From Oikopleura dioica (Eukaryota; Animalia; Chordata), in NCBI GenBank assembly GCA_907165135.1, contig OU015567.1, positions 5,394,001 to 5,458,000 on the forward strand: a stretch of DNA of 64,000 bases, read 5' to 3'. This document shows positions 16,137 to 37,870 of this stretch, in pieces. Numbering within the stretch: position 1 is the stretch's first letter; each line of letters starts with the position of its first letter. The notes below the pieces were generated by a model that saw only the letters and a program-made list of their open reading frames with translations, ran no database searches and was not told where the DNA came from. The position numbers were made by a program, and so were the translations under genes.

Positions 16137-16238
16137 TTTAAAAATGCAGCGCAAAAGTGAATTTCCCGCAGTATAAAAGAACACCAAATTCTGAAGAGCC
16201 GTATACAGTCACTGTATTATAGTGAAAAAAATTCCACA

Positions 16239-16499
16239 ATGTTCTTTGAGAGAATTTTTCTTCTTCTTGCTCAAACGACAACCGCATGGAAATTTTACGA
16301 TGATACTATTCCACAAGATTTTGGCGAGTATGGATTGAACAACGATTACGAGACGGATATCAAAATGACTAAAGGACTATCAAAATTAAGCTTCGTAATC
16401 CCAAAATTATCAAAAAAATTATCCCAAAAAGCAAAAAACCAACGACAGGACATTCAAGCTCTGTTCGATCTTCTCGACTCGTCAAAGAAATTTCTTTGA
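16239..16499 (+). CDS. Small secreted protein (86 aa), unknown function
   Basis: ATG start, signal-like MFFERIFLLLAQTTTA, acidic middle segment and Lys-rich amphipathic C-terminus. A TATA-like gtataaaa lies at about 16171. Confidence 0.45.
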   Translation: MFFERIFLLLAQTTTAWKFYDDTIPQDFGEYGLNNDYETDIKMTKGLSKLSFVIPKLSKKLSQKAKNQRQDIQALFDLLDSSKKFL

Positions 16500-16659
16500 A
16501 AAAAATCTTGAGAAAAATCATCATCCTTTCATTTCAATAAAAAAATCATAAAGAGAAAACTGACCTAGATTTTTCTCACTAGACTCACTTCCGGTTATCT
16601 GAATTAAAAATCACGCTTTAGCACAAATATTAGAGAAAAAAATCGAGAAACAAGAAAAA

Positions 16660-17598: not shown

Positions 17599-17789
17599 AC
17601 TTTTCTCAAAATTCCCATTTTTTTTATTGCTGCCGGAATCTGAATCCTCGCCTGAAAAAAATGATCCTTTCCTTCAAGAATTCAATTTCATAAAAAATAG
17701 ATTAAAAAAACAAATTTCGTAAATATTATTTTTTCAGTTCTTTTTATTAAAAACATGCACGCAAGAAACAGATGTAAGCGAGTAGATAT

Positions 17790-18155
17790 TTAAGTGCAAA
17801 ATCCAGCGGAGACGTGAAATAAGACAGGTACTGGTTCGCCACCGCTATGATTCCCAATTATTTCGGAGCTTTGTATTTGGTCTCCGTTAATGTCGATTCT
17901 TTCAAGAGGGTTATTTAAGTCTCCATAACCCGAAAACAGGAAAATCGAATCGTTGATTTGAAGAGACGAATACGATTGAATAGCCTCAAAACAAATTAAA
18001 AAGCGAATAAATAAAAGCGAATGAAAAGTTCAACGAACTCATCGATCGATCAAGTGATGAAAAATAAACTTACGCCTTTCAAAGTTCCCGTTCGGGACCA
18101 GAAGTCGTTTGAAAGAAGCCAGACATGATCTAAATAAGTTCTTCCATTTCCAGTG
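17790..18155 (-). pseudogene. Paralogue C, 3' part (Kelch blades), cut off by the Maverick
   Basis: Reads TGNGRTYLDHVWLLSNDFWSRTGTLK, then an intron, then ...VLFHVSAGFCT*. It joins in frame to 48031 when the element and one TSD are removed. Confidence 0.85.
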
Positions 18156-18204
18156 AGTAGTTAGAATTTAGTGCCGGGGTCCGAGCAACATGGATCCTTT
18201 TGTC
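18156..18204 (+). repeat. Left terminal inverted repeat (49 bp)
   Basis: agtagttagaatttagtgccggggtccgagcaacatggatccttttgtc. Confidence 0.97.
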
Positions 18205-18370
18205 TTTAGGGTGGCCCCGCTTGAGCCTCCGGGCGCCCCGCGCTCGATATTCCGGCCATTGTTTGCGTTCACACCCTATGTTTGGGCGCTCTTATTTCAA
18301 TATCCTGATGCATATTTTTTTTATATATTAATGCATAAAACAGACACAACATAATTTTTTGTATAAAACT

Positions 18371-18856
18371 TTATTCATGGAAAGTGACAGTTTTTGGGTC
18401 GTCCCAGAGATCCGCGGCAAAGAGTTGTCCGATTTCACTCTCGGAAGTAATGACCATATCAGGGAGATAAGCATCAGAATGGAACAGTACTCGAAGATTT
18501 TTCAGAACTTTGATCCGATCTTTGCAGACATTTGAGTCACAGTTATGTTCGAAAATTCGCGCGGGCATAGCAACCTTCAGGAATTTTTTATTTTTGTAAA
18601 GTCGGAATCGTTCTTTCGTGCCTTCATCCAGTCTTTCTATTTTGTCAGAGCGTTCGACTGTCACATATATCGGACGGCGGAAGTCAAGTGGCGCTGAGAA
18701 AAGAACACAGAAACCAGATCTTTGTTTGAAAGAGAAGTATCCTTTTCTGAAAAACTCGCTTCTAATCAGTTGGACGAGAAGATGGCTTCGATAACAATTT
18801 GGGTTCTTCGTGCATTTGGTGATAAAAAAATTATATGGGAAAATCTCTCTTTTCAT
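18371..18856 (-). CDS. Maverick accessory ORF, 161 aa, CxxxxC-type module, unknown function
   Basis: Intact ATG ORF; the segment NCDSNVCKDRIKVLKNL resembles the modules in 19121-19871. Confidence 0.6.
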   Translation of the reverse strand: MKREIFPYNFFITKCTKNPNCYRSHLLVQLIRSEFFRKGYFSFKQRSGFCVLFSAPLDFRRPIYVTVERSDKIERLDEGTKERFRLYKNKKFLKVAMPARIFEHNCDSNVCKDRIKVLKNLRVLFHSDAYLPDMVITSESEIGQLFAADLWDDPKTVTFHE

Positions 18857-19120
18857 TTCCTTCTTTTTGAATAATTGAAACCAATATTCTTTTCAACGGT
18901 ATACTTCCCTCGAATATTTCAATAAACCTTTGTCACCACCTAGACCCATTGTTTCTTAGTTTTCGGCGATTCCGGCGATTCCGGCCGATTTTTACGTTCC
19001 AAGGACAATGCTCTTACAAATCAAATCAACCATTAAGAAAACTGGAAATATAAGGACCCAGGGAAAGGCTTTCACTTTAAGTTGCCTCAATCGATTTCGG
19101 ATTTTCTTTTTTGAGAAAAA

Positions 19121-19871
19121 ATGAGAGATATACTAGTAGATATGGGAGAGTACTCATATTATAAGGAGCCCTTTCATCCTGACGAACCTGGTCTTCATAT
19201 CACAAAAAATGGGGATGAAACGTTTACCGTTATTCAAGCAAATTTGAAAATCGAATGCCAGCAATCGATCTGTAAACAACGAATTTTATTTCTGAGAAGA
19301 ATTTTATTTGATTTCACTAACAATCGTCAAACTTATGCAATCACCGAAAGTAAGGATTTGGCAGCTGTCTTCAAATTACGTGATAATCAACGCAGCAGAT
19401 ATTACATGACACGTCAAATGGGATATGATTTCCTTGTTGAAGAATTAAAAGAAGAGAATCCAATTCCTTTTGAAGTCAATCCGGAGTATCCCGATAACAG
19501 TAAGTAAAAATCTTTCATATCTTTTTATTTAATAAAATGAAGTTCCGAGATATTACACGATGGCTTCAGCAATGATTTTCAATCACACCTGCAGTAAAGC
19601 AAAATGTCAGCATTTTGTTTTACTATTGCGAAAATTGCGGCATGAACTGAATAACTCCCCGTCAATTCTTCTTCGCGACATAAAAGACGTGACTGAATTT
19701 TTTGACGTAGCTGTGGGGCTTAAAGCTCGCAGTAGAGTCCGAATTTATGTCCCAGAAAAACTGGCTCTCAACTGGATTGATGAAGCTACAGAACACGACT
19801 TCCTTCTCCAAGACTCTATTCGAAGTGATCTGATTCCTGATAGTAATAAATTTTTCTTCTTCAAAAAATAA
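19121..19871 (+). CDS. Maverick accessory gene, spliced, two internal CxxxxC modules
   Basis: GT-AG intron 19500-19542 joins the two track ORFs in frame (DN-IPRYYTM). A further small 3' intron is possible. Confidence 0.65.
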
Positions 19872-20298
19872 CATCTATTTTTAGTTGAGCATCTCGCTCT
19901 CAACTCTACATAAGCGATAACGGAACTGTCATGAATCAATAATTCTGCGCCCGAAAAAGATTTGTTTATTCTGTTTCTACATCTCATCATTCTGATTCTT
20001 TCTGGACAAATAAAATGTTTTGACTGGACATGAGAAGCGTGATTTTTGCAGGTTCACGCGCCTTAGGAAATGTTTTTTTTTGGTGTCACCCGCAGCGACC
20101 TAGATACCCTGGAACTCCAAATTTACCTAGGAATATAGTTAATTAGGTCACGGATTTTGTGTATTCACGGCAAAAATAGCGTCAGGAAACAGCGCCAGCA
20201 AATTTTGATATAAAAACCCGATAGCATCCGTCAAAATCAAAAACGAAAAATCACCACAAACAAAAACTTCTTTTTTTTTGTGTAACCCAAAGAAAAAA

Positions 20299-20796
20299 AT
20301 GGACGTCGAAGCCAATGATCCTCCATCATACCGGGAAATTGAGGCGAAAGCTGTCGAGAAATTCAGAAGAGTCCAGAAATTCAAAAATTTCCCGATCATC
20401 GCCTTCAGAAAATTTCTCAGGCTCATCGCTACAATGTCCGTCGACAACTCATGGCTCTGGACCTACAATGGCTGGCTAGTCGTCTCGGCATCGAATGATG
20501 GTAAAGCACAACTTCTACGATTTGTCGGTGGAATGGAAAATCCGGACAGGTTCGAAGTGACAATTGGCAGCGAAGATGAAATCTACTTGGATGGAATGGA
20601 CGTTACTCCGCTTGCTGCCCTCGAAACCCAACATGACACGATCTTCGTCGTATCAAGCGAGGACTTCATTTTTCACTGCGACTGGGAGAGAACACCCAAC
20701 ATGAAAATTCAATTCGAATCCTGCGTAATCGCCGTCGAAATCGACGATGAGGGCGACCTGGCATTCAACCCGAAGCGCCTCTACTCTGGCAACTAA
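20299..20796 (+). CDS. Maverick accessory ORF, 165 aa, beta-rich C-terminal part, unknown function
   Basis: ATG at 20299, open frame, N-terminal PPSY motif. Confidence 0.6.
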   Translation: MDVEANDPPSYREIEAKAVEKFRRVQKFKNFPIIAFRKFLRLIATMSVDNSWLWTYNGWLVVSASNDGKAQLLRFVGGMENPDRFEVTIGSEDEIYLDGMDVTPLAALETQHDTIFVVSSEDFIFHCDWERTPNMKIQFESCVIAVEIDDEGDLAFNPKRLYSGN

Positions 20797-21569
20797 TCAG
20801 AAGAAAATGAACCAACAGGTGCGCGTTTTCTCTTTTTTCAATTTGCTTTCTTGCACAACACAGACGAATTTTTCAACTTCTATTCCACTCAAAACCTTTT
20901 TATCTTTAACATCTTCAGCTTATCTCGTTTTCGTCGCTCAGTTTTATTCTTTTTCACACATGCGTTAGCCCTTACCAAAAAAAAAAACAAAAAAAATTTT
21001 CTTCAGTACAAAAACAATCCGGATTTTCTGCTTCTATCGCTTATTTTGTTTGATAACTCAGTTTTCATCTGCTATTACACATACTCAATCTCATTCCAAG
21101 AAATAAAATAGAAAAAAAAGAAAAAAAAAACTCTGTGTTTTTAATCCTTTGATGCAAAGCAAAATTTGAATATTTCGAGTGAAAAATATTTTAATCAGAA
21201 ATTTTCATATCCTGAGAATGAACTATCCTTGGAAATTAGTTTTCTTGAAAACTTCTTGTGTTGAGAATTCACCGCTTTGAAAATATGCGTTCAAAGAAAA
21301 CGTGCTTTGTATGAAAACGTGCTTTGTTAGAAAACGCGCGCCTCGAAAAATACTCGCTCTCATTCATGCTCGCTGCGGGCTCGAAAAGAAAAGAGCGCGG
21401 CGGAAGTGCGCGCGCGCACGAACAATGGTATGAAATAAAAATGTCGCTATAAAAGACCGATCCATATTTTCCTTTGTTAGAAGTTCGAAAATATTATTGT
21501 GTCGGAGTATATAAGCGCTGTCGATTTTGAAAAAGTATCCCATTCCAAAAAATTTGACAAGTTGAAAAT

Positions 21570-22076
21570 ATGATGCCCTTGAGAGACAACCTTTACTTCC
21601 GTCGCCTCGCTGTTCATTTTGCTGGCCTTAGCAAAGAGGAAATGACAGGCGCTGAAGAAAAAGCGATTCGTAACATAAAAAATGCGGTTGCTTCTAACAT
21701 GGTCGTCTCAGAGGAAGCTACGGAAGAGGTGCTTTTACCCGATGAGAAATGGGCAGCTGATCTTGCGCAGGAGCTTCTCGCTGAACACATCTCCGGTCTA
21801 ATTGACGATGCTCAACTTGTAACGAAACTTTTTTTGGAGTATCGCAGACGTCTCGACACTAGACGAGACAGTAAATTTACTGTCTTAATGGGCTTCTACG
21901 ATTATAATTATGTTGTTTCTGTTGGTTATATGATTATTGGATCAGTGAGTCATGGCGACTCAGCTCAAGTGAATTCATTTATCGTCACCCTGAAGCGTGC
22001 TCTTCTTGGCGAGCTCGATCGCTACCTACAGGAGCTTGCAGACAAAATTCATGGTGAGCAAAAATACCGTCTATAA
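21570..22076 (+). CDS. Maverick accessory ORF, 168 aa, predicted helical, unknown function
   Basis: Intact ATG ORF preceded by TATA-like tataaaag (about 21448) and tatataag (about 21508) and a GC-rich box. Confidence 0.6.
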   Translation: MMPLRDNLYFRRLAVHFAGLSKEEMTGAEEKAIRNIKNAVASNMVVSEEATEEVLLPDEKWAADLAQELLAEHISGLIDDAQLVTKLFLEYRRRLDTRRDSKFTVLMGFYDYNYVVSVGYMIIGSVSHGDSAQVNSFIVTLKRALLGELDRYLQELADKIHGEQKYRL

Positions 22077-22343
22077 TATCAACCCTATATTTTAGAGCAC
22101 TTTCTTGGTCAACGACTCCCCATTCGACGTGGGCTCGCATACACAACTCCCTGGATGCGCAAACGATTCGATATCCAACACTGATTTCAAACAGAAATTT
22201 CCTCTCATTCACTTTCCTTAGATCTAGATTCCACTCAAATTATATCATGCTCTCATTTTTTTCTCTCTCTCAAATTTTTAGTCATATCTTTACTGTTTAG
22301 GGAAAATAAAGTATTCAAAAACAAAGTATGAAGAATTTATCTT

Positions 22344-23030
22344 TTATTCCGTGTAGCATATTGGAAAATTCGGTGGATCAATATTTGAAAACTCTCGGTT
22401 TATGCCAGTAATGCATCTGAGATCGTCATCTTCGCAATGAAGTGAAGCATTTAAAATTGCGTAGCTGTGTTTGTCATCATTTGTTCGAGTGAAATCTTTC
22501 ATGCACTGCTCGTATCGTTTTTTCATGCCGAGTTGCTTCGCAAGTCGTTTGTTTTGCTCACGATCTCCGTAATTTTTAAAAAGAATGAATATTTCTGTAT
22601 TATTACGAATAGTTTTTGCGTGTTTTCCTTTTTCATAAACATTTTGAGTAATCAGGATTAATGAAAATTTCTTATTACGACGGTAGACCTTAAAAGCGTT
22701 AGCCACCGCCTCTGATTCGATCGCTTCGCTAAACTGATCGTCAATTACGACGAGAGATCGCTTTGGGATGTTCAGAAAATCCTTTGTTGTTGGTAGTCCT
22801 TCTTGAATATACACGCGAACCGAGTCAGGTATATTTTTGTCCCAATCCAAGTTGCAGTTTCCAATAGCTCCATAGTAAAAAACATGTCGAATACGTTTTG
22901 AAAAATGATTGTTTTTGATAAGTTTCTCCGTCATAAATGTTTTTCCGGTTCCGGTACTGCCAGCAATCATTATTGATGCTGGATGATGGAATTTGGTTCC
23001 CTTAATGATTCGACCTTGGATAGTTCGCAT
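22344..23030 (-). CDS. A32/FtsK-like genome packaging ATPase
   Basis: Walker A IAGSTGTGKT, Walker B SLVVIDD, and motifs RRNKKFSLILITQN and IRNNTEIFILFKN typical of Maverick ATPases. Intronless. Confidence 0.93.
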   Translation of the reverse strand: MRTIQGRIIKGTKFHHPASIMIAGSTGTGKTFMTEKLIKNNHFSKRIRHVFYYGAIGNCNLDWDKNIPDSVRVYIQEGLPTTKDFLNIPKRSLVVIDDQFSEAIESEAVANAFKVYRRNKKFSLILITQNVYEKGKHAKTIRNNTEIFILFKNYGDREQNKRLAKQLGMKKRYEQCMKDFTRTNDDKHSYAILNASLHCEDDDLRCITGINREFSNIDPPNFPICYTE

Positions 23031-23317
23031 TTTTCAATTGATATCGCTATCAAATTCTCTGTTTTGCCTGGCTTGATATTGAAACCTCTTTTCTCTTCAA
23101 CTCTGCAAATCTTTACGGCGATATAAGGCCAAGTCGCTAGCCAGTTGTAATCTTCAGGATTTTTCGGTGTAAATTTGATCGATTGCTTTGTCAGAATTTT
23201 TGCTTTCTCGGATAGATGTGGGGATTCCTCTGTCACCTTTATGACCTTGGCTTCAATAAAAAACGTTTGAGTATTTTGATAAAAAGCGGCAGAATCTGTC
23301 GCGCCTAAAAACTCCAT
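22970..23317 (-). CDS. Maverick ORF upstream of and overlapping the ATPase, 115 aa, unknown function
   Basis: ATG ORF whose 3' end overlaps the ATPase start by 61 nt. Confidence 0.55.
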   Translation of the reverse strand: MEFLGATDSAAFYQNTQTFFIEAKVIKVTEESPHLSEKAKILTKQSIKFTPKNPEDYNWLATWPYIAVKICRVEEKRGFNIKPGKTENLIAISIEKCELSKVESLREPNSIIQHQ

Positions 23318-23435
23318 TGTTTAAATGAGTCAGAATATATTTTCAGAATAATTAAAAGCCGCTTGGCGGCGCGCCTGATCTTTTCATAAAAATGAAGCCT
23401 GGAGAATAAATAGAATTATAAATTGATATTGAGAA

Positions 23436-23852
23436 ATGGGTCGAAAAATAATTTTCGATCTAGCTGACATAAAGCGACACTGTGTTTCTTCAACCAAGTT
23501 AGGATCGACATTTGTCGGTAATCTCAAAGAGAAAATTCTTCTGAATGAAACTAAGAAGCCAGCAGGAAAACTTGAAGAATCTCTCTCTGAGGACAAGAAA
23601 TCAAATCAAAAACGGAAAAGCAGCACCAAATCAAACTCAAAAAAGAAGAAAAGAAAGATTTCCATTAGTTCAGAAAGCTCTGCCTCAGAATCAGAAGCGG
23701 AATCAAAGGAATGTCCAAAGATCAGCACCGGAGAAAGAGAGACAGACGAAATCAACCGAAAAGACGACGGAGAAGAGTCAGCAGGAAGCTCAACCGAAGG
23801 TTCCTCAGCCGAATCAAGCGACTCAGACACGTCAAGTGGAAACGAGTGCTAA
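23436..23852 (+). CDS. Lys/Ser/Glu-rich low-complexity ORF overlapping the integrase 5' frame
   Basis: ATG ORF, 138 aa, with KKKKRK tract followed by a Ser/Glu-rich tail. Confidence 0.5.
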   Translation: MGRKIIFDLADIKRHCVSSTKLGSTFVGNLKEKILLNETKKPAGKLEESLSEDKKSNQKRKSSTKSNSKKKKRKISISSESSASESEAESKECPKISTGERETDEINRKDDGEESAGSSTEGSSAESSDSDTSSGNEC

Positions 23853-24847
23853 AGATCTTTTTACGAATTTTAAATATCCTTCTGCTTATTCTGGGGATAT
23901 ACAAAAATTCCTTCTCGAAAACGAAGCTATTTCTCGACATCGTAAAAGAGTTAAAAAATTTCCTCGCCGACGTACACGCGTGAATGGCCCCTTCACTGCA
24001 ATTCAAGTCGACACTATTTTCGGGCTTTAAACGGAATAAAAAATATGAATCAATTATCCTTGTCTTCTTTTAAGCCCTGCAAAAGGTTCATGCTCCGATA
24101 TTCAAAGAAAAATAGTGGATATAAATATATTTTGACAGTTATTGACTGTTTTTCACGCAAAAACTGGGTTGCTCCGTTAAAAACAAAAGAAGGGGATGAA
24201 ACAGCAGCGGCGCTTGATGAAATAATAACTTCTATGCCAGAAAAACCACGGACAATCGCGACAGATATAGGAACAGAACTTATTAACAAAGCTGTGAGAA
24301 GAATCGTTGTTGATAAATATGGAATGGTCGAGTTTCGGCTCGCTGGGCTCAAAGGGGCCATTATTGAAAGATTCAAGTATACTTAAACCCCTAAAACGCA
24401 AACGCTAATTTTTTTTCAAGCCAATCGCTTGGTGCAAGAATTCAACGGTTTTTTATGGAAAATAATACCGAGCGCTGGGTGGACAATCTTCAAGACTTTT
24501 CAAATGCGCTTAATAAGACAGTTAATCGAACGACTGGGATGCGGCCTGATGATATTAATTCTGACAACTGGCATGAAATCTATGAAAAGCTGTATAATTC
24601 AAAGCCATACTCTCTAGCAATTTGTAAATTTGCTGAAGGTGATCAAGTGCGTATTCCTCTAGAAATATCAAAGGCAAAGGAAACATTTCGAAAAGGAATC
24701 CACGCGAGATGGTCAAAAGAAATATACACGATTTCGAGAGTGTACCGCTCTGGGCCCGTTTGCTATTTTAAGTTGAAGAGAGATTCTACTGTTCAAAAAG
24801 ATATTTTTTATGAGAAAGAGCTGAACTTAGTCGCGAGGAAAAGATAA
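23545..24847 (+). CDS. Retroviral-like (rve) integrase, 3 exons, about 398 aa
   Basis: DDE triad: IQVDT, IATDIG and IERFNQ. The last is created by GT-AG intron 24377-24420. Also GYKYILTVIDCFSR, MENNTERW, KFAEGDQVRI and WSKEIYTI. Intron 1 boundaries are uncertain (best fit GC-AG 24024-24085). No C-terminal chromodomain was seen. Confidence 0.93.
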
Positions 24848-24878
24848 AAATATCCGTTTTTCATTTTTTCTTTTAGAT

Positions 24879-25305
24879 ATGTATTCGCAATCACTTTTCT
24901 TGTCCACGACCTCAGAGTACTATCTCGGGGCTTACTATAAAAATGATGAAATGGTTCTCCGTTGGAGTTTACCCCAGCCGGTTAATGGAAAATATGTTTC
25001 TCTCGCTAACTACGCGGTTCGTAGCAATATAACTGAACGACCGATCAGAGTTTGCTGTAATCTTATTCACGACAATTGGAAAAACCCCGATGGGTGTCTT
25101 GGGGACATTTATCATGGCCACGGGCTATATTCAGACGACAGATGGCAAATGGAAGCGAGAGAATTCCGCATCATTGAGCTTAAGTAGATATTTTCGATTT
25201 TTCCATATGAAGATTTTTGTTTCTAGGTTTTCGGAAGACGTTATGTACGCAAGCCTAACATTAAAAATCTATGATAATAAAGAGCGCGACTCGACATGGG
25301 AATAA
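24879..25305 (+). CDS. Putative minor capsid (penton-like) protein, 2 exons, 127 aa
   Basis: Sits between integrase and protease. IRVCCNLI and EFRIIELK...LTLKI resemble the penton YVYCDI and F.xIEI...VTLH strands. GT-AG intron at 25184-25226. Shorter than usual. Confidence 0.5.
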
Positions 25306-25505
25306 CAAAGGCGCGTTAAAAATCGACTTCCCCCGAATCAGAACAATGAAACACCTGCAACGGAAGTCGTCTTTTTAAACAATAGCTGTTTCTCTTTTGT
25401 TCTCGGAATCAGGATCAAGCGTGATCAATTCTTTTATAACTCATTCTTAGTCATTATTATATGTCACAGTTAAATTATAATTATCTTTCGTATTAGACTG
25501 AAAAT

Positions 25506-25658
25506 ATGAGACGCAGAGGTATTTGCAAAAATAAATTAAGATTTGTTCCGAAACGACTCCGTGGAAAAGGAAAAAGAAAATCAACTGGTAAAAAAAAGAA
25601 GAGTAAAAATGGAAGCAGGAAGAAACGAGATAACAAAAATTCAAAGAAACGAACTTAA
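25506..25658 (+). CDS. 50-aa highly basic core-like peptide (absent from the ORF track)
   Basis: MRRRGICKNKLRFVPKRLRGKGKRKSTGKKKKSKNGSRKKRDNKNSKKRT*; 26 of 50 residues are K or R; contains LRGKG. Confidence 0.6.
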   Translation: MRRRGICKNKLRFVPKRLRGKGKRKSTGKKKKSKNGSRKKRDNKNSKKRT

Positions 25659-25670
25659 AGACTGATATCC

Positions 25671-26108
25671 TTGTTTTGTGCAGAAAAGTATGTTAAAGAC
25701 CTTCCCAATTTCGGCGGAATATTTTTTGCTAACGACTTGGCCAAAATAGCAGTGCTTGGATTTCCAATCGGATTTTTGGTTTACCATGAAGAGCACTGGC
25801 TTGTGGTCTACTTAGCAGACGATTATATAGAGCTTTTTGATCCGCTCGGATGCGTCACTAACTCAACATTTCTTTTTCTTCAAAAATTTCTCCAAACACA
25901 TCTGCACAAAAAAATTCTGCACGCATCCCCCCGTATTCAATCAGCAACAACCTCGAACTGCGGGCAGTATTGTATCTGTTTTTTATACTGGCGACTTCAA
26001 TGCGGCAACGATCTTTCTTCCTTTCTCTTTCTCTTTACCAAAGACCAACATGCAAATTCTCAAATTATTAAAAATTTCTTTAAATCAATAAAACAGGAAT
26101 ATCACTGA
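25671..26108 (+). CDS. Adenain-like (C5) cysteine maturation protease
   Basis: Catalytic residues in order: EHWLVVY (His), ELFDPLG (Asp), RIQSATTSNCGQYC (Gln, Cys); also FGGIF. No in-frame ATG, so the true 5' end is unresolved. Confidence 0.9.
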   Translation: MFCAEKYVKDLPNFGGIFFANDLAKIAVLGFPIGFLVYHEEHWLVVYLADDYIELFDPLGCVTNSTFLFLQKFLQTHLHKKILHASPRIQSATTSNCGQYCICFLYWRLQCGNDLSSFLFLFTKDQHANSQIIKNFFKSIKQEYH

Positions 26109-26134
26109 TGATAAGAGTTTATTTGCAGTTAATA

Positions 26135-27394
26135 TTAATCAACAGTAACGTCGCCATCAGGAGAAATTGTCAGTGATCTCTGAGTGATCGGCATATATAG
26201 CAGAACAAATTTATCGTCAAGAGGTTCGGTAAAGCTGAGTTTTGCATGAATGAAGGTTGTTCCTTCAATTCTCTCCAGTTGTTCGAAATTGACAACAATG
26301 ATGAAATTTCCATCTTTGAATTGATGAATTGGTAAAACGCCCGAGCTCCAAGGATTCATATAGCGATCGGTCGCGGTCAAAAAGTTGTGATAGAAGTCGG
26401 TGTCCGTTACCAAAGGAAAGCCTTCAACTTTGACATTGTCGAGAAGAATCTCAAAGCTTTTGAGCTTATGACGGGTAAATTTTGTTATGCACTCGGTATC
26501 TGAACCGTTTAAGCGCGTGATCGGACAAATTGCAAAGACCGCATATGATGGCATCTTTCCCTTTGTGAGATCGATAAGAAAGTCGGATTCATGATCGTTG
26601 AGGACAGGTTTTCGGACGACATAGTCAAGAAAAGGCATTTCGAATGGATATTGGGCGTATCCTCTCATCTTATTGTCGAGTTCGTCGCTTTTCAGGTACA
26701 TTGCTCGGAAAACTGGCTTGACAATGGTAACAACTGGGTCAGTGAAATTGAACGGGATGGATGCTAGATTTGGATTATCGAGAACCGTCACATTCTCTTT
26801 TATTTTCATAATTGAAAAAGATGCTGGTGCTCTCTGGTATTTGAGGCGGATTTCCGTATTTGCTGGAAGAGGTTGGTAAGTTCTCGCAATGCCATGATTC
26901 AGTGGTAAAATAAAGTCATAGCGCAGCCATCTTTGCGTATTACCATCAACTTCTTTTTTTATCTCAGTACACATATTCTGCCTGATCGCAATTTGCGTTC
27001 CATCGAATTTCTCAGCATCGTCGTTGAAAACATCGTAAACACCTTGAGTTGCCATTGTGTTCTCCATGTAATTTTCGTCAAACATAGATTTATTGAGAAA
27101 AAAGCTACTCATACAATTGTCGAATTCGGATCCTCTCTTTGAAACTGTGTCTTGGTCAATATCAAGCACGATATTTTCAAAAAGTTTATTACAAAAATCG
27201 TTATCCGGCACATAGTTGTCCGGTAAATCAACACTGAAGGCGAGCGCTGAGTCGGCAAGCTTCAGATATCTTTTTTGTTGTGTGAGAAGGAACTCAAGGC
27301 CGTTTTTGGTATTACTTAGCGGCTGAATGTGCAAAACTTTGCATTCCTTGTAGCCCATTGAATCGACGCTAGAAGCCTTTGTAAAAGAAAACAT
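26135..27394 (-). CDS. Major capsid protein (double jelly roll), 419 aa, intronless
   Basis: FILPLNHGIARTYQPLPANTEIRLKYQRAPASFSIM and GKMPSYAVFAICPITRLNGSDTECITKFTRHKLKSFEILLDNVKVEGFPL match the Maverick MCP pattern (..L..GV.LRI.L.R....F.LM; G.LP......F....NG......F.F....L..I.L..DG...P..PL). Confidence 0.85.
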   Translation of the reverse strand: MFSFTKASSVDSMGYKECKVLHIQPLSNTKNGLEFLLTQQKRYLKLADSALAFSVDLPDNYVPDNDFCNKLFENIVLDIDQDTVSKRGSEFDNCMSSFFLNKSMFDENYMENTMATQGVYDVFNDDAEKFDGTQIAIRQNMCTEIKKEVDGNTQRWLRYDFILPLNHGIARTYQPLPANTEIRLKYQRAPASFSIMKIKENVTVLDNPNLASIPFNFTDPVVTIVKPVFRAMYLKSDELDNKMRGYAQYPFEMPFLDYVVRKPVLNDHESDFLIDLTKGKMPSYAVFAICPITRLNGSDTECITKFTRHKLKSFEILLDNVKVEGFPLVTDTDFYHNFLTATDRYMNPWSSGVLPIHQFKDGNFIIVVNFEQLERIEGTTFIHAKLSFTEPLDDKFVLLYMPITQRSLTISPDGDVTVD

Positions 27395-27567
27395 TATTTC
27401 AACTTGAACTTGTCTCTTGTGCGCACAATACAGATCACTTTATTCTGATTCAATTTATTTTATTTAAAAGAGCGCCAGATCAAACAAAAGACACAAGGTG
27501 GCGCAGCTTTCTTTAGAATATATATTAACAAAAGAGATCATTTTTTTACTCTTTGTAGGACATTTCA

Positions 27568-28182
27568 ATGACGATTCCCCAATTCGCACACTTTTTTATT
27601 CACCAAGTTTTTTTGGGACACATAGATGATGAAACCAAAGAGAGATACCAAAAAGGTAGAATTAGCAATTTTAAAAAGTTTTCTTTTATCTTTTCAGTCT
27701 ACGATGAGATTGCCGACTTTCGAGCAAGCAACCCTAAAATTTATATCTTTGATCGACACATTGACAACAACAAAGACCGGCATGCCATCGCGGGCGTTAC
27801 TTCATACGATTTTTTGAGTAAAAATCTGTCCGAATATCTTCAAAAGGATGATTCAAATGTGATAAACTGGGTTGTTCTGACCATCTGTGACCTTTTCAAA
27901 CATTTTTACTCTGTCATAGAGACAATTGATGAAACTGAATTACTACGATCTCACATTTTTAACTTGCTGACTTTTTATGACGCGGTAAAGAATGCTCTTT
28001 CTGAAAATTCCTGCTCAAAAAAAGACCACGCCTTTTGTTTAGATTTTCTAACCTTATACCTTCAAAAAGATATTGATATAAGTATCACTTATTTGAAAAA
28101 TTTGGAAAAACTGAAAGAAGAAAAAAAAAGTTTTTTTTATCGAATATTGCGACTCATTAAATCCTGCTTTCGAAGTCAATAA
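27568..28182 (+). CDS. Maverick ORF, about 190 aa after a likely in-frame 42-bp intron, unknown function
   Basis: ATG ORF; GT-AG segment 27656-27697 is T-rich and removes GRISNFKKFSFIFS. Confidence 0.6.
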   Translation: MTIPQFAHFFIHQVFLGHIDDETKERYQKGRISNFKKFSFIFSVYDEIADFRASNPKIYIFDRHIDNNKDRHAIAGVTSYDFLSKNLSEYLQKDDSNVINWVVLTICDLFKHFYSVIETIDETELLRSHIFNLLTFYDAVKNALSENSCSKKDHAFCLDFLTLYLQKDIDISITYLKNLEKLKEEKKSFFYRILRLIKSCFRSQ

Positions 28183-28307
28183 ATAAACGACAAAAAGTGA
28201 TTTTGGCCTTTTGGATTTTTTTATTTTTTTTTTGGGTTTTTGACAAGAATTTTATATTTTTTTTTGAGTTTACAGGCAGTTTTTAATTTTTTTTGTGGCT
28301 TCTATCT

Positions 28308-28745
28308 CTACCATTTGGAGAAGGCCGCATGATCGTGGACCATCTTGATGTAGTGATGATCATTCGCCAGTTGCTCGAGCGGGTCGTCATCCTTTCGAAA
28401 TATTTCTGGTCGTTGTAGATTTCTTATCGTGGCAGCAGCGTCTCGGTAGGGCTCCATGAGCTGTTCTCGTTCGTTGTGGGTCATCTCTTCTAGGCGTTTG
28501 TCGAAATTCGGGCTCGGCTGTTTTGACCACGTCCGTTTGTCTGTATAGTACGGCGAGTATGGTTCTGTCTCCTCGATTCTTTCTTGTTTGCACATCATTC
28601 TCACAGCCAGCTCTGCTTGGGCGGCTCTCATTTTTCCTCTGGGTACCCTCTCACCGTCACGTCTTCCTTCGGCATACTCCTTAAGAGTTTGAAGATCAAG
28701 CTCAAGGCAAATTTCTTGAAAGCTCTTCTTTTGCTGTTTAGGCAT
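28308..28745 (-). CDS. Maverick ORF downstream of pPolB, 145 aa, unknown function
   Basis: ATG ORF with coding-like composition. Confidence 0.55.
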   Translation of the reverse strand: MPKQQKKSFQEICLELDLQTLKEYAEGRRDGERVPRGKMRAAQAELAVRMMCKQERIEETEPYSPYYTDKRTWSKQPSPNFDKRLEEMTHNEREQLMEPYRDAAATIRNLQRPEIFRKDDDPLEQLANDHHYIKMVHDHAAFSKW

Positions 28746-28927
28746 TTTTCTATTTTGAATATTTCCTCCTAGAATTGGCCATTATATGGGCCACTCATTC
28801 AAAGATGGCGCCAAAAATATCGGAAGGGAGGGCGCAATATCACCTGCCGCTTTCAGCTGGTCTTGCACAAATTTAAAGACTAATAAGCGGTGTTATCAAA
28901 CAATCAATCAAGTTTATTTTCAATTTG

Positions 28928-31900
28928 TCAGATGTACAATCCATCTTTCATCAGTGGTGAAACAGTGACTAAATCGGTATGAACGAAGCTTTTGATGTAG
29001 TCTTAAAAAGAGACCGGGATCCAGTTCTTTCTAACATTAATATATTATAATTTTATATCGGTCATTTCCTGAGTTCAAGGCCTTCTTGCGTATTTTTCTC
29101 ATCACCATTCTTCTGTCACACTTAGTTATTTGAACAGAATCCACTTCGAATCGCTCTTGATCCAGAAGGCAGCTGATAAACTCTTTAGAGCTGACTAGAA
29201 AAAAAAGCGTAGATAATAGAGAGAAATTAACTCCTACCCTTGTATTCTCTGCTAGTCCCTTTTGTCGATTTTTTAATTTTTGTTCCGTCATCAAAGATGT
29301 AGCACTTTTTAAATAAAGATATTTCAAAAGATATTATTTTATTTACCTTGCTTGATAAACCAACAAAGACACCAGAGTTTGCTGACTTTTCACTTTTGAG
29401 TAGTCCAGGTTTTCTTTTGCTCTCGATCGTATCGTCGACGAACCAATTCGGCACTATTTCAGTGTCCCACCTGGCGACTAGTTCCGGCTTAACACAATCC
29501 CTAAAGCTGCCTTGCGTGAGACCGAACATCACTGAGTCGGTGTCTTCAAAAAATTTGTTTGATGAGTCAAAAAGAAGTTTTACCGATATATGAGAGAACG
29601 TAGGATCCTTCAACAAGGAATTCGAAAATAATATGGATGAATTTATACATATGCAGCTTACTTTCTTGATAGACTAAAATTCTGATTATGATAAGAAAAA
29701 TAAGTCTTTCGAACCAAAGAGAGAGCTTTGAAAATGGATAAATCATTTTCTAGGGAAAAAATAGATTTTAATTAGAAATTTTCTTTTATCCGTTCATATG
29801 GGTTGCAAGATCATCCTTGATTCGCTTTCGTTTTTGTTTGATATTCACGATATTTGTGTCGCCTTCTGCGTCCATGACCTCGTATCCAATAAAATGAGGT
29901 TTTCGCATTTGAAACCAGAGTTTCTCCAATGGTAAAAATTGGACTTTGTCTCGCTTTTCTGGGTTTTCCCCGAATTTTCCAATTGCAGATGACATGATCA
30001 GCTTAGCTCGGTTTGCTGCGACATCATTTTTTGTATCTGGCTTCGAGTAGTGGACTCGCCGGCTGACAACATCTTTAATAAATTTTCCAAACGGCTTTTC
30101 CTTGTTATACAAAACGCCATAATGAATTTGCGTAACTAAATATGTAAATTATAGATTTTCACTTTCTCAGAAACGAGATTAATCACCTTCTAAACCGAGA
30201 TCCAGGTAGAATTGCAAAAGGTTCGTAGTCAGCAAAATGCCATCAGCGTGAAAGCACATAGTGTTCACCTCTCTCGGAAACTTTCCGTGTCTCATTTTTT
30301 CATTGACCATATCTTCCGTAACAATCGTTTTCTTGAATATCGGAGGAAATTTCAGAAGATCCTTGATCCTATCTTCAGGAGTTCGAATATCGACTTTAAA
30401 GAATCCGTAAGGTTCATTGGATTCTATCGAGTCTAGAAGACTGTGAAATGTTATGTTCTCATCAAACAAATATGGACAATACTTCGGCCTATTTTTTGAT
30501 CAAACAAAAGAATAAACAAAAACCCTTAAATCTGCAGTTTTGACCAGTTCCTTGGGAATTCATAGCCTAATTCACGCAGGGTGCTAAGCTGGGCAGCCCA
30601 CTGGCAGCCAGAGATCGTGAGATACAAATCTAATCCCGATTCGTCGCTAGTCAAAAATTGAAGCCGTTTCTCAGACTCTTTTTGCATCGGACGTTCGACT
30701 TTGCACTCCGGATTTGGACAGCGATGATATCGACAACCATTGTAGTCGAGTCCAATTGCTTGGCCATTTTTGACTGCATAGCCATCCAGAAAATAGGTGC
30801 CGATTTTCTTTTCACCTTTATTGAAGGCATGGATGACATTTAAGCCAGTTGAATGCGCAAAAAACTCCAGCCACTGAATCGATTCGACCGAGACATGTGT
30901 CTGTGTTCGATCCATTGAAAAAAGTTTGAACTTCTTTCGAATTTTCTTGAGGTGAAAGCCAGGCCCAGTTGGAAGATCATTTTGAAGTGTAAACGGGTAG
31001 AGAGAGTTCATATCTTGTTGATCAATAAACATTATTTTTTTTCCGTTTGGGGCTCGGCGCGCGGCTTCCGGTAGAGTTTGGTCTTCTGAGTTTATTGCTA
31101 GCAGACGATGTTGAACGCAGCATATGCCACCATTCAAATGCTTTCTCACGTCGTTTTTTAATTCAGGAACTGGGATCGAATAAATATTTTGACAGTCAGG
31201 GTCATATTTATCGAATGCGATCTGCTGAGCTAGACCGGGCAGAGAGAGTTTTTTGTGAATGTCAATTCCATATTCTTGCAAGAAGCCTTCTGCATACGCA
31301 TTTATGCTCTTCAATAAGAGTCGGCAATCAAGTAAGTTGTATTCTTTCAGAAAATCTACCATCGATTTGCATTTATCGTCGAAATACTCTCTTGAAGCCG
31401 TATACTTGTCGATACTTGTGTGGAAGAACATTTGAGCCTCATCAGACTTACAAAACTTCTTTTCCGCCGCATTCCAAAATGGGAGAAGTAGGTCACGAGG
31501 TATTTGAAGAAGTTTTGCAAAAACGTTGAGCGGTCGTATATTGGGTATCTTGCTGAGCTCCTCAATTTTCATATTTGCCTCGTTTACAAATTTATCCGAT
31601 GGCATGTACGTAGACGATCGAAAAAGTGTGTAATCTGGAAAAGTGGTCCAAAGTTCAGGTTCTGTTGCTGACTGGAAAAGCTCGTATGGATACGTCATTT
31701 TTGAGAGATCCTTTACTCCGACGCTGGCTGCAAATTCTTCTAGCTTGCCCGACGAAAAATTGAAGAAATCCTTGAAGACAATTTTTCCAAATCTGAGGAG
31801 CATATATCCGCGTCCTCGTTGAATAACATCATGTGAATTAAAGTCCTCCTCGTAATGCGAGGCCAGATACTCGACAAGTGGTCCAATAATACAGTTGTGA

Positions 31901-33423
31901 TCGAATTTTTCTCCGTACTAGAATAAATATGATAAGACAATATAATTTTCAAATAAAGCATACCCAAGAGTAAACAGTGAGATTACTGTAGCTTTCCAGA
32001 ATGCGTAGCCGGCGCTTCCAGGATGATTTTTCTTTGACGTCCATATTTGTAGTATCTGCGAGTTTTTCCAAAACAAATTCTTTTCCTCTGATTATTTCAT
32101 CGGGAAGAGTTTCTTCAATTTTCCTTTGGCAATGTTTAAGTGCTGCCCAAAATTGCCCGATCAGATCAGTCAGATCATCATGTTCATCCCCCTTCCGTTT
32201 TATGAAGAGCTCTTTATTCTGCGTAGTAACGATTCCGATGGAAAGAAGCTCGAAATGACCTATTATCTTTGATTGCTGGTCGTAGCCCTCTTTCATGTTG
32301 TTGGATTCGATATCAAAAGCAATGAATCGTGTCTTGTGACGGTCTGGAATAAATCCCGAAGTCTTTAAAAACTCCACGTCTTCGTCGACGACATTGCCGT
32401 AGACTTTTTGCTTATGCACCGTGACACTTTCGCCTCTGCACGTGTCAACATGTCGACGAAATCCCCACCGTTGTGTTGTCTCGAAGGCACAATTTTTTAT
32501 CGGACAACTGTGTGTGTTGAATTTTCCATTTATCAAGGTCATCCTTGTTTCCTTGTTGAAATAAAGTGTTTGCCCGATCATTTCCAGTTTTATCATTGGG
32601 CTTCCAAGAAGAGTAAATAGTTTCACTCTGCTAATCTGGCGGCCAATTTGATTGCCTTGATTAGTCCTTGACCAAATTTCTAAGCCAATTTCGAAATGAT
32701 CTAAATAAATACTGTTTTCTTAGAGTAAATTTAAAAAAAAATAAACCTCTGAATTTGATCAAGTCCTCCTCTCCAATAATCGACATTCCAAAGCTTTTTA
32801 TTAGCTCTTCGATTTTTTCAGCCATGTTCTCATTCGATGTTTTGTACTTTACAAGCGCGACAGCCTCAAAAATGTTGACGAGTCGTAGCGCCTTTGGTAT
32901 CATCTCTATTTGAGTTATACTTGGGTCTGCCAAAATTTCAAATATTCCGAATTTCTCGGGATCGAAGGATCGGGTCGTAAGTCGGAGCTCAGTTCGTCCG
33001 TTTTTTATGTTTTCTGTTTGATATCCGACGAGACTAATTTTTCACCGGATTTGTCATTGGTAAATCGTTCATACCTGTCATTTGATAAACAGTTGTTTAC
33101 GCCCAAATCATAGATCAATACATGAATATTGTATTTTTCCTCGTAAATCGGCATATTAGCCACGCTGGGTTGGATTAAAAAAGTCTATTTGAATATTCGA
33201 ACATTGGAATTTTTAGTTTTAATCCTTCGCAGATATTTTCATAAGCATCTTGTGGTATACCGTAGTAGTCACAAGTTGTTCTTATTTGATTCTTCAGTTC
33301 CTTCAAAACTCTCCAATTTATTTTTCTCTCGTACGAGCAAACTGCGATTCCAAGACGCACTATCTCATGAAAATTTGAATCTTTTTCTACTAAAAATTTA
33401 TAAGATTGTTTTGCCCTCGACAT
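28928..33423 (-). CDS. polB: Protein-primed family B DNA polymerase, 13 exons, 1304 aa
   Basis: Exo I FIAFDIES, Exo II YGEKFD, Exo III YNLLDC, motif A QDMNSLYP, nuclease-like insert FLDGY...YNGCRYHRC, motif B KLIMSSAIGKF, motif C YIDTDS. Twelve introns: 33165-33202, 33034-33074, 32701-32746, 31918-31963, 30489-30544, 30136-30186, 29726-29795, 29674-29714, 29544-29583, 29305-29346, 29195-29237, 29002-29068. Spliced length is 3915 nt = 1305 codons. Confidence 0.93.
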
Positions 33424-33841
33424 TTTTCATTTTTGATAAAAATGAGTAAACGAAATCGGATGAGCCGGGACTTTTTATATCTGACCGGATACCAAGCTTT
33501 TTGATTAAAAGCCAACCAAGCAATCAGCGAATAATGAAAGTCGGATGTTATCCCTTTGAATACACAAAATCTTCTGTATCGATTCGACACCTTTTTGTAA
33601 AAACAAGCGTGAAAGAGATCTGGCTCGCGTCAACAAAGTAGAAAGGCAAACAATACTGGAGAATAATCCGATATTTTTCTTATTCCTTTTGATCGGCAAA
33701 CAAGGAAATCTAGGCTTTCAAAATGTCTGCAAGAACCTTTTTATTGACACAAAGGAAATACACAAAGTGATTTTTCTATCAATGATTATTTTATTCGGGC
33801 GTCGCTAGAATAGGGAGAAGGATAAGGAACAGAAATGCTTC

Positions 33842-35140
33842 TTATTTTGGATATTTTCCCTTGAAAACTCGTGCCTTTGCATTTCGGCTGCTTCTTCGAG
33901 TTGGTCGAACTGGAAGAGGAGTGCTCTCTGATATGGGGGCGGGCGGCGGAAGCTGCTGAGCCACTTGGTCTAAGAAGATTATTTAAGATAACTTTTATTG
34001 TTTTTTTTTTCATTACCTTGAAGAATCTGCTGCATCATTTCGGGAGTTGGGTGCGAGACAGAGTGCTCATCGACCTGTAGAGCTGGTTCTTGATTATCCG
34101 GTTAAAATCACATAAAAATCCCTTATTATCAAACCTTCATTTGGCTGCGGAGTTGCGACAGATGGCTGCGCGGGCGCTTGGATATCTTCGGCTTCTTCTT
34201 TTGATTCTAAAAAATATAAAAAATCGAAGAAAGAAAAAAACGAGTCATTATTTTCTACCTTGTAAAGAAAGCTCGTTCATATTGACGACAATATCTTCGA
34301 CCGGATCAAGCTCATCTTCGGTTATTTCCGGGAGTGGAGTGATTGATGCGAGCTCATGCTCCTCGGCGAAGCTTTGCTAAAAGTAATTTTTTGAGTATAA
34401 ATTCATTATCGAAATTTTGTGACCTGGAAGCTGTAGAAGCGCTCGGCGTCATTGGTTACTTCCTCATCTTGGCGATTTGTCAAAGGGAGTGGGTTTTCTG
34501 ATGGTTAAATAGAAAAAAAAGGACGCTAAGTAAATCACCTGTTTTTATTTGCTGCGGCTCCTCCTGAAGCTCGCCAATTCTTTCTCGTGCTCGATTAAAA
34601 ATCTAGCGTTAAAAATAAATAAAAAGACGCGTAATTAAATATCTCTTACCGCAAGCGGGGATTGCTGTTGGTGGGCCCAACGGTAGAGGTAGCAGAGGAA
34701 GATCGATGCTGTGATAGCACCCGCTGCAAACGCCGCTCCAAGCCCGAATGTCTTAGTCAGTGACGTTTGATTCTGGATGATCATCTCGCCGTTCTCAGGG
34801 ATGGCAACAGATTCGTTTGGTGGTACCACGACGGTTTCGTCTGTCGGTCCCACGACGGTTTCGTCTATAGTTTAATTTGATAAAATTCGAATCTTGTCTT
34901 AAGCCTACCTTCATGATCAAGGACTGGGTAGAGCCTTGTCGGAGGGTCCTGCGTAATGACTTCCTCCAATAAACCGTCGCCTGCTCCTTCAAAGTCAGAG
35001 TCCATTGGAGAGGTCTCAGGCTCGAAGGGAGCCGCCGCGACAGGCGGCTCGGGCTTAGGCGCGCTGAAGAAATTTGTTAATTATTAAGAAAATTATTATT
35101 TATTATATCTCTTTACTTACAACTTTCGCTTCCAGGACAT
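33842..35140 (-). CDS. 9-exon single-pass membrane protein, 305 aa, acidic/Pro-rich, unknown function
   Basis: Eight GT-AG introns (35064-35120, 34865-34908, 34603-34649, 34498-34538, 34377-34423, 34207-34258, 34089-34134, 33970-34016) give a 918-nt open frame from MSWKRKF to VFKGKYPK*. TM segment FGLGAAFAAGAITASIFLCYLY. Confidence 0.85.
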
Positions 35141-35289
35141 TTTCTGACAAAAATGTTATTTGAATTGTTTATTTTTAACGGTCGTGATTTTCAATAAATG
35201 AAAATTCGAAAGAATTTTTCTTCTCTCTTGCGCCACTAACTGATATAAAAAGAATTTTCACAGGACACTCATCGCACGAGAGAAAGAGA

Positions 35290-37305
35290 ATGTCGCATCG
35301 GCACATTTTTCTAAGCGATTCAGACTTGAAGTTTCGCCTTCAAAAGTCCTATCACAAATTATCAATTCTACTTGCCAAAATTGGCGAGTTCGAGCTCGCT
35401 GATAACATCAAAGAGGACGACATATCCCCGTAAGTCGAAATCAAACAACGCGTCGAAATTTGATAAGCAATTTCTTGATGATTCTTTTAGCTATATGCAA
35501 TTAAAGCAATTTAGCTGGTTAATTTCGTAAATAAGGATTTTAACTAAGTTGTTTTACAGTCAACAACTGATTATATTTTTAGGTACTGGTTGTTATCAGT
35601 TTACCTCACTAACATCGACAAAAGTATCATTATATTGCAGATAAAAGTCCGCGATTTCAATAAACGTCCAGACTGGCTTCTCGACGAAATAAAATCGTCC
35701 TCTTTCATTTTTGGCGAGTCCCTTCGATATGTAAAATGCAAGCAAGACAACCTTCGCATTCATATTCTTGATACGACTAACGAGTCGTCCATATTTTTTT
35801 TGAAAACAAGTCGATTCGAGACGCTGCTTAATAGTGAAGAAATTTACAAGTACGCCATAATTGATGGTTCTATGTGCAACGCCCAAATTCATCAATTCAA
35901 TATCAAAGACCTGTGGGTCTCACCAATGTCTGGCGATATAAATGCTGCACATCAGACAAAACTACAAATCGATCAAGGTGATTTCAAAGATCTTCTCCGC
36001 GTCATGTAAGTTTAAGATTTGAAACTTTGAGTAGACGCTTATTCTTTTTCTAGTGAGAGTAATACTTCGGAAACAAGAATTACTGGCATGCTGACAAACA
36101 AAGCCCTGGAAGCATCGTTTCGCGTGAAACAAATAAGAAGCGATTCGGAACATCCGGGCTACACAAAGAAGAATCGAGACAGTTGGTTTGGAGCAACCTC
36201 AATCTACTCAAATGCATCAGTCTTCAAATTGAGACAGGATCGCCACTACAAAGCGACAACGTCATACAGACTCAATCAAATCTTCGATAGCCGAAAAGAG
36301 ATGCAGCGTAAGGAATCGGAGGAAAAAATGAATATCCTGAAGAAAATTTACGAGGACTTCAACCTATCCAAAGACACGAACAAACCGAGCAATTCCTCCT
36401 GTGAAGACAACAAAAAAGCTCAATCTGACGCGACAGAAGAACTGACGGGAGAAAAAAAATGCAGCGAAATCTCGACGACCAGATGCGGAGAATCTAGTCA
36501 CGATTCAGACGAAACTATGATCAGCGATATCCCTTCGGACTCCGGCGACTGCTCTGATGAACATGAAGATCGGATCAATTCTGCTGAAGAGCCATTAGAA
36601 GAATTTTGCGACATTTGCCATCATTATGGATGTATTGAAGGCTGCGATAACTACTTCAAAATCAACCCAGGCTTCCAACACACTGACTGCGAAGACGTCA
36701 GTGACACTGACACAAGCAGCGAGTCGAGCGATGAAGATATTTGCCCTGAAATCTGCTCGATCGAAACTTGCAAGGGAACTTGTGGGAAAATCAAAGATGA
36801 GCCATCGGATGAATCCGAAAAACCACCGCTGGCAAGACAACATGCAGTTAAAATTGAAACGACCAATTTCGTCAGGATTGAAATCCCAGACGCAGCTTTT
36901 GACGGAGAAGTAATTTTCTCAAGTGCTGACTTCGAAGCAGGTCGTGACAGCAGCGACGAGAGTTCTGTGTCTGTTCAAAGCGACTCTGACGATGGAAAAC
37001 AACGAATCGGGCCGAACAGTTACTTCATACGCAAGAATTTATTACCTTCAAAAATCAAGGAAGAAAACGACGATTTTTGTGGGGACAAAAATCACCTTTG
37101 CTTTGAGGAAAAGGAGTCTGGTAAGCATTTTAGACTTTTAAATTTGCATTTTCCTTCTATAGAGGATGAACCGACCGAAGCCGACAAAGAGTTCATTAAT
37201 GACGATTGCGTCAATGAATCCGATCTAGCTGTACAGAACTTGCTTGCCGCTGAAAGGGAAGAAAAAATCAAGAAGGACCTTGAAGATATTATCGGTAAAT
37301 TATAA
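35290..37305 (+). CDS. 3-exon Maverick gene, 604 aa, acidic Cys-cluster C-terminal half, unknown function
   Basis: GT-AG introns 35430-35582 and 36006-36053 join MSHRHIF, track ORF 35590 and track ORF 36088 in one frame (1815 nt). Confidence 0.75.
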
Positions 37306-37870
37306 AGAGAAAAAAAACCCATTCTGATATAATTTTAAAGCTGTTGCTCAGCGATTCAAAAGAGACTCATCAGCACCAACGGCAAAGGACATCACGAACG
37401 GCATCAAAAAACTGCGTAAACGTAAGTTTATCCTCTTTTCAGAAAGAATTTCTCACAATTAAATTTAAGGCAAATACAAAAGAATCGTCATCGAGGACTC
37501 AGATTCTGATAACGAGCCGATGCGACCAGCAGAGCGACATTTTACCGACCGTCGCGCACTGAAATCAGACGAAGACTCTCCTGCACCAAAAAGTAAAAAT
37601 AATCAAAAGATGTCATTTTAATATAAAGTCTCAGTGAAACGTAACCTGATGAGCGACTAATCTTCTCAACGAAATCCATGTATAAAGCGAAACGATCATC
37701 ACCGCCTAGAATGATGCCAACATATGAATCCTATAGCCTTTAAATCATCCTGTTTTTGCGATTATTCTACCTTATCAAACTGAGTCCCTAGAAACTTACT
37801 TTCCTCAAAAAGTAGAATAAATTTTTTCGAACATAAGACCAGGCTGTTGTATTTTCATATTTGATTTAGA

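Follow-up and report, generated by a model that had tools for sequence, protein, structure and literature searches.

On the minus strand of 28928–33423 of the window, by which we mean the whole stretch of 64,000 nucleotides (nt) analyzed here from the Okinawa assembly of Oikopleura dioica (OKI2018_I69, chr2), lies a gene for a family-B DNA polymerase that is protein-primed (pPolB) and of the Maverick/Polinton type. We consider it likely that this is a real Maverick polymerase belonging to an old, larvacean-resident lineage, and that it carries at least nine ordinary host-type mini-introns together with one non-canonical intervening segment. The original prediction, which had proposed an intact Maverick whose polymerase is split by twelve host-style introns, is partly supported by our analysis: it was right on the polymerase and on the host type of the introns, and it overstated the number and density of the introns and the intactness of the element.

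Judged by its sequence, 29037..33423 is a genuine Maverick/Polinton-type protein-primed family-B polymerase gene, as had been proposed. The profile PF03175 (DNA_pol_B_2) matches two open segments, both above the gathering score (30529–31917, E 3.8e-11; 29789–30148, E 7.4e-9). An all-against-all representative search with the 463-codon exon gave 658 relatives, 27 of them below 1e-30, including full-length ones of 1000–1300 residues; a length-limited search with the 463-codon segment gave two proteins only, at 46% and 38% identity. In tblastn and BLASTP alignments, the relatives run colinearly over successive open segments whose frame keeps changing, and the C-terminal part is matched in BLASTP by relatives P0010, P0011, P0016 and P0019. 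No stops or frameshifts were counted inside the homology-supported exons. At columns that are at least 80% conserved among the relatives, the prevailing residue is present in the window 13 times out of 14 in the 737-nt exon, 33 times out of 33 in the 1373-nt exon and 7 times out of 7 in the next exon (53 of 54 overall), the relatives being too few over the last exons for a fair count. Comparison of the long polymerase exon with the sequences of solved structures returned nothing useful.

The continuity of the intron-split frame is clearly non-random and extends far beyond chance. With six GT-AG introns, one frame extends over 3638 nt of the real strand, against a mean of 1074 nt and a maximum of 1696 nt for twelve introns in shuffled sequence (n = 20), and 1758 nt on the opposite strand.

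Public annotation starts the polymerase gene at 33154, which is 269 nt downstream of the start codon proposed here. Upstream of this proposed start codon, at a distance of about 50 nt, is a TATA-like box (33423–33480, minus strand), and an upstream open reading frame (ORF) of 10 codons begins 7 nt before the start codon in another frame. At the 3′ end, the stop ending at 29037 is reached without a further intron, and a polyadenylation-like hexamer is present beyond it at 28918.

Intervening segments of the polymerase gene

All GT...AG pairs that join neighboring open segments in the correct frame were enumerated. A short GT-AG solution exists for nine junctions (38, 41, 46, 46, 56, 51, 40, 42 and 43 nt; Table 1), and seven of these nine segments are independently supported: four by public gene calls and five by uninterrupted relatives. 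The public annotation, which was produced by AUGUSTUS with RNA-seq hints (PMC8008620), contains two calls over the gene, 33154..30526 (831 residues) and 30310..29786 (157 residues). The length of the first is exact after removal of the 41-, 46- and 46-nt introns, and that of the second after removal of the 51-nt intron, the agreement with both proteins being one of length arithmetic only. Adjacency in the relatives was tested exon by exon, and five junctions were covered. Of the motifs quoted in the original prediction, YIDTDS and SSKCY occur in the window; their codons straddle the 40-nt and 42-nt segments, respectively, and the earlier claim that these two motifs would become whole only after splicing is supported; S-x-K-C-Y is contiguous in P0010, P0011, P0016 and P0019 at the point where the window has the 42-nt block.

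The GT-AG segments have 24% GC and 42% T, while the exons have 40% GC. We found no similarity of the introns to one another or to the rest of the 64-kilobase (kb) window, and no introner-like near-identical copies there. An introner origin, which entails many near-identical copies, was set aside because the introns are unique within the window, and self-splicing group I or group II introns were discarded since the window has no Rfam match and segments of 38–56 nt are far too short. We infer that the segments would be spliced in vivo and that the encoded protein would be functional.

The frame-tracking search, which admits GT-AG introns only and of at most 90 nt, stalls at a single junction, where no GT-AG solution is compatible with homology. 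Here, the relatives are continuous and the window has roughly 110 nt of unrelated sequence, for which there are several frame-keeping G(A/C/G)-AG solutions. Longer GT-AG solutions at this junction were rejected, since they remove conserved residues. The segment could represent an intron with non-canonical ends, such as this host commonly has, or a pair of small introns around a micro-exon, which the original prediction seems to assume, or a lesion. By frame arithmetic, the gene comprises about 10 intervening segments and ~3867 coding nt, a total that assumes one 117-nt frame-keeping solution among several, the others of which alter it. The 12 introns and the 3915-nt open frame of the original prediction were not reproduced: we arrive at nine GT-AG segments and one non-GT-AG segment, and the last of the proposed introns, which served to reach 28928, is matched by no GT-AG candidate up to 80 nt long.

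The ends of ORFs in the relatives were compared with these positions. Four ORFs of the P0001 cluster (on contigs of 1.7 to 21 kb) all cross the 56-nt intron and end 2–3 residues past the donor point of the 51-nt intron, and three ORFs of the closest cluster (51–64% identity) all end at the point equivalent to window position 30730, inside the longest exon. This pattern, which is indirect and read from protein ORF ends, suggests that the relatives also have interruptions, some at shared and others at different positions.

Table 1. Coordinates, within the window, of the polymerase gene, its predicted introns, the virus-like neighbors and two host genes
Feature	Position	Strand	Remarks
pPolB gene	29037..33423	-	~11 exons; PF03175, colinear relatives, frame-tracking search
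Polymerase N-terminal/exonuclease and palm part	30529..32719	-	Two long exons, 737 and 1373 nt; best conserved part
Polymerase C-terminal part	29230..30499	-	Motif B, motif C (YIDTDS), S-x-K-C-Y; PF03175 profile positions 335–417
Candidate GT-AG intron, 38 nt	33165..33202	-	5′-most; weak donor; no independent support
Predicted GT-AG intron, 41 nt	33034..33074	-	Length fits public 831-residue call
Predicted GT-AG intron, 46 nt	32701..32746	-	Length fits public 831-residue call; a second 46-nt candidate, 32712..32667, fits equally
Predicted GT-AG intron, 46 nt	31918..31963	-	Fits public call; P0005 and P0008 gapless across
Predicted GT-AG intron, 56 nt	30489..30544	-	Frame change; contains the stop ending the public call; four P0001-cluster ORFs cross uninterrupted
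Predicted GT-AG intron, 51 nt	30136..30186	-	Fits 157-residue call; P0010 residues 854/855 abut across
Predicted GT-AG intron, 40 nt	29544..29583	-	Splits motif C codons between YI and DTDS; P0011 continuous at residues 1610/1611
Predicted GT-AG intron, 42 nt	29305..29346	-	In frame, stop-free; splits SSK from CY
Candidate GT-AG intron, 43 nt	29195..29237	-	3′-most; T-rich acceptor; no independent support
Probable double-jelly-roll major capsid gene	26138..27394	-	419 codons, uninterrupted
Putative P-loop packaging ATPase	22344..23030	-	228 codons, uninterrupted
Retroviral-type integrase region	23545..25302	+	rve core in 23955–24383; predicted split gene, no public call
Host GH16 beta-1,3-glucanase	1766..3342	+	37-nt intron; 85% identity to an O. 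dioica protein; tblastn
Host-type sulfotransferase	16660..17598	+	Paralogue at 49623–50490 with 40-nt intron

Comparison with host introns and known systems

The sequence comparison supports a resemblance of the interruptions to the host's own spliceosomal mini-introns, in length as well as in ends and composition. The GT-AG introns of host genes in the window measure 37 nt (GH16), 40 nt (sulfotransferase) and 50 and 44 nt (amino-acid permease). For O. dioica as a species, a median intron of 48–51 nt, 11–12% non-GT/AG introns and 40–41% GC are reported (PMC8008620), and GA-AG introns are notably frequent (PMC7072748). The polymerase segments are like ordinary O. dioica introns in their length, GT-AG ends, T-rich 3′ part, low GC and occasional non-GT donor. 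They differ from them in residing in a virus-derived gene, the distant relatives of which are uninterrupted, which makes each polymerase intron a datable gain. The claim of host-like mini-introns thus stands for size (38–56 nt against 48–51 nt in the host), ends and composition, and only in part for density: the polymerase has ~1 intron per 390 nt (~10 in ~3.9 kb), its exons reach 737 and 1373 nt whereas the host median exon is ~152 nt, and introns are entirely absent from the neighboring capsid and ATPase genes.

Nuclear DNA viruses with spliced replication genes include adenovirus, with its E2B polymerase, and a chlorella virus with an intron in the DNA polymerase gene. In these viruses, as predicted here, a viral replication mRNA needs the host spliceosome, but the genes contain one or few introns. 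We know of no described case of ~10 introns inside one polymerase reading frame.

The premise that Maverick core genes are generally intron-poor agrees with the literature, in which introns are reported to be absent from the core genes of intact Mavericks in vertebrates, “in agreement with Kapitonov and Jurka (2006)” (PMC8097293), and those of nematode Mavericks are called intronless as well, with introns in the cargo only (10.1101/2022.07.12.499685). With the animal Mavericks or Polintons (polintoviruses, adintovirus-like elements), the present locus shares a pPolB and an rve integrase core, with a putative packaging ATPase and a probable capsid gene beside them, within an animal genome. In contrast to animal Mavericks with intronless core genes, it has ~10 mini-introns in the polymerase and an apparently split integrase, and the terminal inverted repeats, protease and penton of such elements were not found here.

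A second point of comparison is offered by the Maverick-like proviruses of dinoflagellates, which are populated by Introner transposons (PMC12166617 / PMC11957031). These Maverick-Polinton-like proviruses are likewise integrated and bear spliceosomal-type introns derived from host intron dynamics. Their introns, however, are copies of repeated intron-generating transposons, whereas those of the O. dioica polymerase are unique, unrelated to one another, 38–56 nt in length and found in an animal host.

Our literature search returned no larvacean Maverick treated in substance, one survey of transposable elements having Oikopleura as outgroup and naming Mavericks elsewhere. It likewise returned no report of Maverick core genes dense with ordinary introns, although a mention in the early papers of 2006–2007 is possible. 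The novelty claimed for an intron-rich Maverick holds to the extent that no case with ordinary introns was found, and is lowered by the introner-colonised dinoflagellate proviruses (PMC12166617). We regard the finding as real and moderately novel, and the intactness of the element as unproven.

Virus-like neighbors and other features of the window

The polymerase, the rve integrase, the putative packaging ATPase and the probable double-jelly-roll capsid gene are clustered within ~11 kb. The product of 26138..27394 is probably a double-jelly-roll major capsid protein, as judged by homologues and by a predicted fold. Nine homologues were found at 50–76% identity, five of them full-length (418–420 amino acids). 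The predicted fold, which is of low confidence (predicted local distance difference test score, pLDDT, 52.7), gave 99 Foldseek matches at E ≤ 1e-3 in a viral structure library; for this low-confidence model, the named matches in the top 50 are mostly double-jelly-roll major capsid proteins. Over 78% of its length, the capsid ORF shows 100% identity to a protein annotated on chr2 of OKI2018_I69. The locus of that protein (GCA_907165135.1, OU015567.1, positions 5406344–5431394) matches 37394..12344 of the window at 100% identity over 25,051 nt and is thus the window's own sequence and not another element; with the GH16 gene, it identifies the host as O. dioica, a larvacean tunicate, although an exact look-up of the GH16 product gave no record. 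Public call g5396 (391 residues, 27394..22344, minus strand) fuses the initial 78% of the capsid ORF with an exon ~4 kb off near the ATPase, across the integrase region, and is probably a chimeric prediction. At the intron rate of the polymerase, ~3 introns would be expected in the capsid gene.

The ATPase matches PHROG 2666 (terminase large subunit, E 4.1e-8) and, weakly, Pox_A32 (E 0.0028; 17.6 bits, below the cut-off of 22.8), and compared with the sequences of solved structures it gave P-loop noise only. In the integrase region, the core domain only is matched (PF00665, E 7.8e-9; 36.2 bits against a cut-off of 32.6), with weak matches to solved foamy-virus integrase structures, and the open segments that flank the rve core can be linked by GT-AG candidates of 40–68 nt. 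Neither an adenain-like protease nor a penton was detected by Pfam or PHROG matches in the open segments tested between 16 and 39 kb, a search that divergent genes could escape. A 424-codon ORF at 36031–37302 was considered as a capsid gene and rejected, since its product is acidic, rich in Ser and of low complexity. Comparison of this acidic protein and of the capsid candidate with the sequences of solved structures returned nothing useful.

The acidic protein is encoded by a long gene at 35290–37559 (plus strand), upstream of the polymerase and transcribed away from it; the protein is rich in Ser, Asp and Glu, dotted with Cys and of low complexity, and has a public call of at least 663 residues and no family match. 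Between this gene and the polymerase, at 33842–35140 (minus strand), a public call of 259 residues extends over 1299 nt, ~520 nt of which are intronic, and is thus intron-dense. The virus-like cluster is bracketed by 1.5-kb direct repeats of 87% identity, each with a Sulfotransfer_4 gene (16604–18130 and 49516–51037), and further repeats of 83–86% identity pair 12985–13615 with 9844–10477 and 17735–18152 with 8106–8520. A perfect (100%) inverted repeat at 14416–15054 and 15499–16136, with 639-nt arms and a 444-nt spacer, belongs to no Rfam family; it may represent a foldback element, or else an artefact of the assembly. At 43706–43887 and 46704–46885, situated 2.8 kb apart and enclosing ORFs without a Pfam match, lie inverted repeats (182 nt, 81% identity) that are possibly the termini of a small DNA transposon. 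Neither the Rfam nor the tRNA scan of the window gave a match.

History of the element and its introns

Several observations weigh against an intron-bearing Maverick polymerase as proposed here. The junction that lacks a GT-AG solution is one, being a possible lesion. Public annotation breaks the polymerase into two genes, ends the first of them inside the 56-nt intron and calls nothing over the last exons, so that splicing there is unconfirmed and expression may be low. The first three exons (upstream of 32700) and the last exon had no BLAST match among 151 relatives. Terminal inverted repeats of 24 nt or more bracketing the cluster were not found, although very short ones would escape, and one copy of the element was seen. 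Finally, the capsid and ATPase genes are intron-free next to a polymerase with ~10 introns and an integrase that is apparently split, which means that intron gain has been uneven across the element.

Taken with these reservations, the history most likely to have produced the locus is that of a Maverick lineage with a long residence in larvacean genomes. Genes of its replication module would have acquired introns in a host with tiny introns and frequent non-GT donors, and because the element copies itself as DNA, the introns would persist in its copies. A full-length polymerase would then be obtainable only from host-spliced mRNA. How and when the introns arose is our inference. With an intronless ancestral state, every intron would be a dated gain.

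We hold as possible, and only tentatively, the further step that this is a living larvacean Maverick lineage, long propagated with introns in its replication genes at positions that differ between sublineages, as introns were won and lost within a virus-like element, and with intron-free capsid and packaging genes.

A stronger reading, in line with the intact element of the original prediction, is that of a polintovirus lineage which is complete, is mobile or infectious at present and transmits the introns in its genome. All four recognised core genes do have open frames, full-length metagenome homologues of the capsid gene exist at 56–76% identity, and in the polymerase relatives the apparent breaks in the ORFs lie at positions that differ in part, as they would if introns came and went in a living lineage. 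An intact element is nevertheless unlikely given what was recovered: no terminal inverted repeats, protease or penton, an integrase that is a predicted model only, one non-canonical polymerase junction and a single copy.

Alternatively, the polymerase, perhaps with its neighbors, could have been domesticated as a host gene after an old Maverick insertion and have gained introns like any host gene. Domestication would agree with the failure to find element ends, with the host-like exon-intron style, with the handling of the region as ordinary genes by the public annotation, and with the retention of every strongly conserved residue, which implies selection. The capsid, packaging ATPase and integrase genes, however, are still open beside the polymerase, which points to selection at the level of the element, and the capsid and ATPase genes are wholly intron-free. 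Moreover, the closest relatives of the capsid (76%) and of the polymerase (46–64%) show greater divergence than the single host gene used for comparison (85%), as fits a fast-evolving element. We therefore give a low probability to domestication.

A decayed fossil, in which random insertions, deletions and stops mimic introns, could account for the fragmentary public annotation and for the junction without canonical ends, but it is very improbable, as all nine interruptions are GT...AG blocks of 38–56 nt and 24% GC that abut exactly on residues adjacent in uninterrupted relatives, and the exons, free of stops and frameshifts, keep 53 of 54 conserved columns. The assembly is nanopore-based (PMC8008620), and indel errors mimicking frame changes can be dismissed almost entirely, since the interruptions are 38–56-nt blocks with defined ends, unlike homopolymer slips, short reads were used to polish the assembly (PMC8008620), and nearby host genes show the same kind of blocks.

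A Maverick polymerase with host-type introns, the reading we prefer, has consequences for how such elements are recognised. Screens for “intact” Mavericks depend on long uninterrupted frames, and in hosts with tiny introns, intron-rich copies that are live or under selection can be miscalled as fossils; the public annotation splits this polymerase in two. That the replication genes are rich in introns and the capsid and packaging genes free of them hints that the two modules may differ in their history or in the constraints on their expression. For O. dioica, a host famous for intron turnover and for its non-GT donors, some 10 unambiguous gains in a gene of viral ancestry provide a rare chance to date new introns and to compare them across the lineages of the species. 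If the intron-bearing lineage is indeed a living one, it would constitute a natural system for studying how Oikopleura makes new introns.

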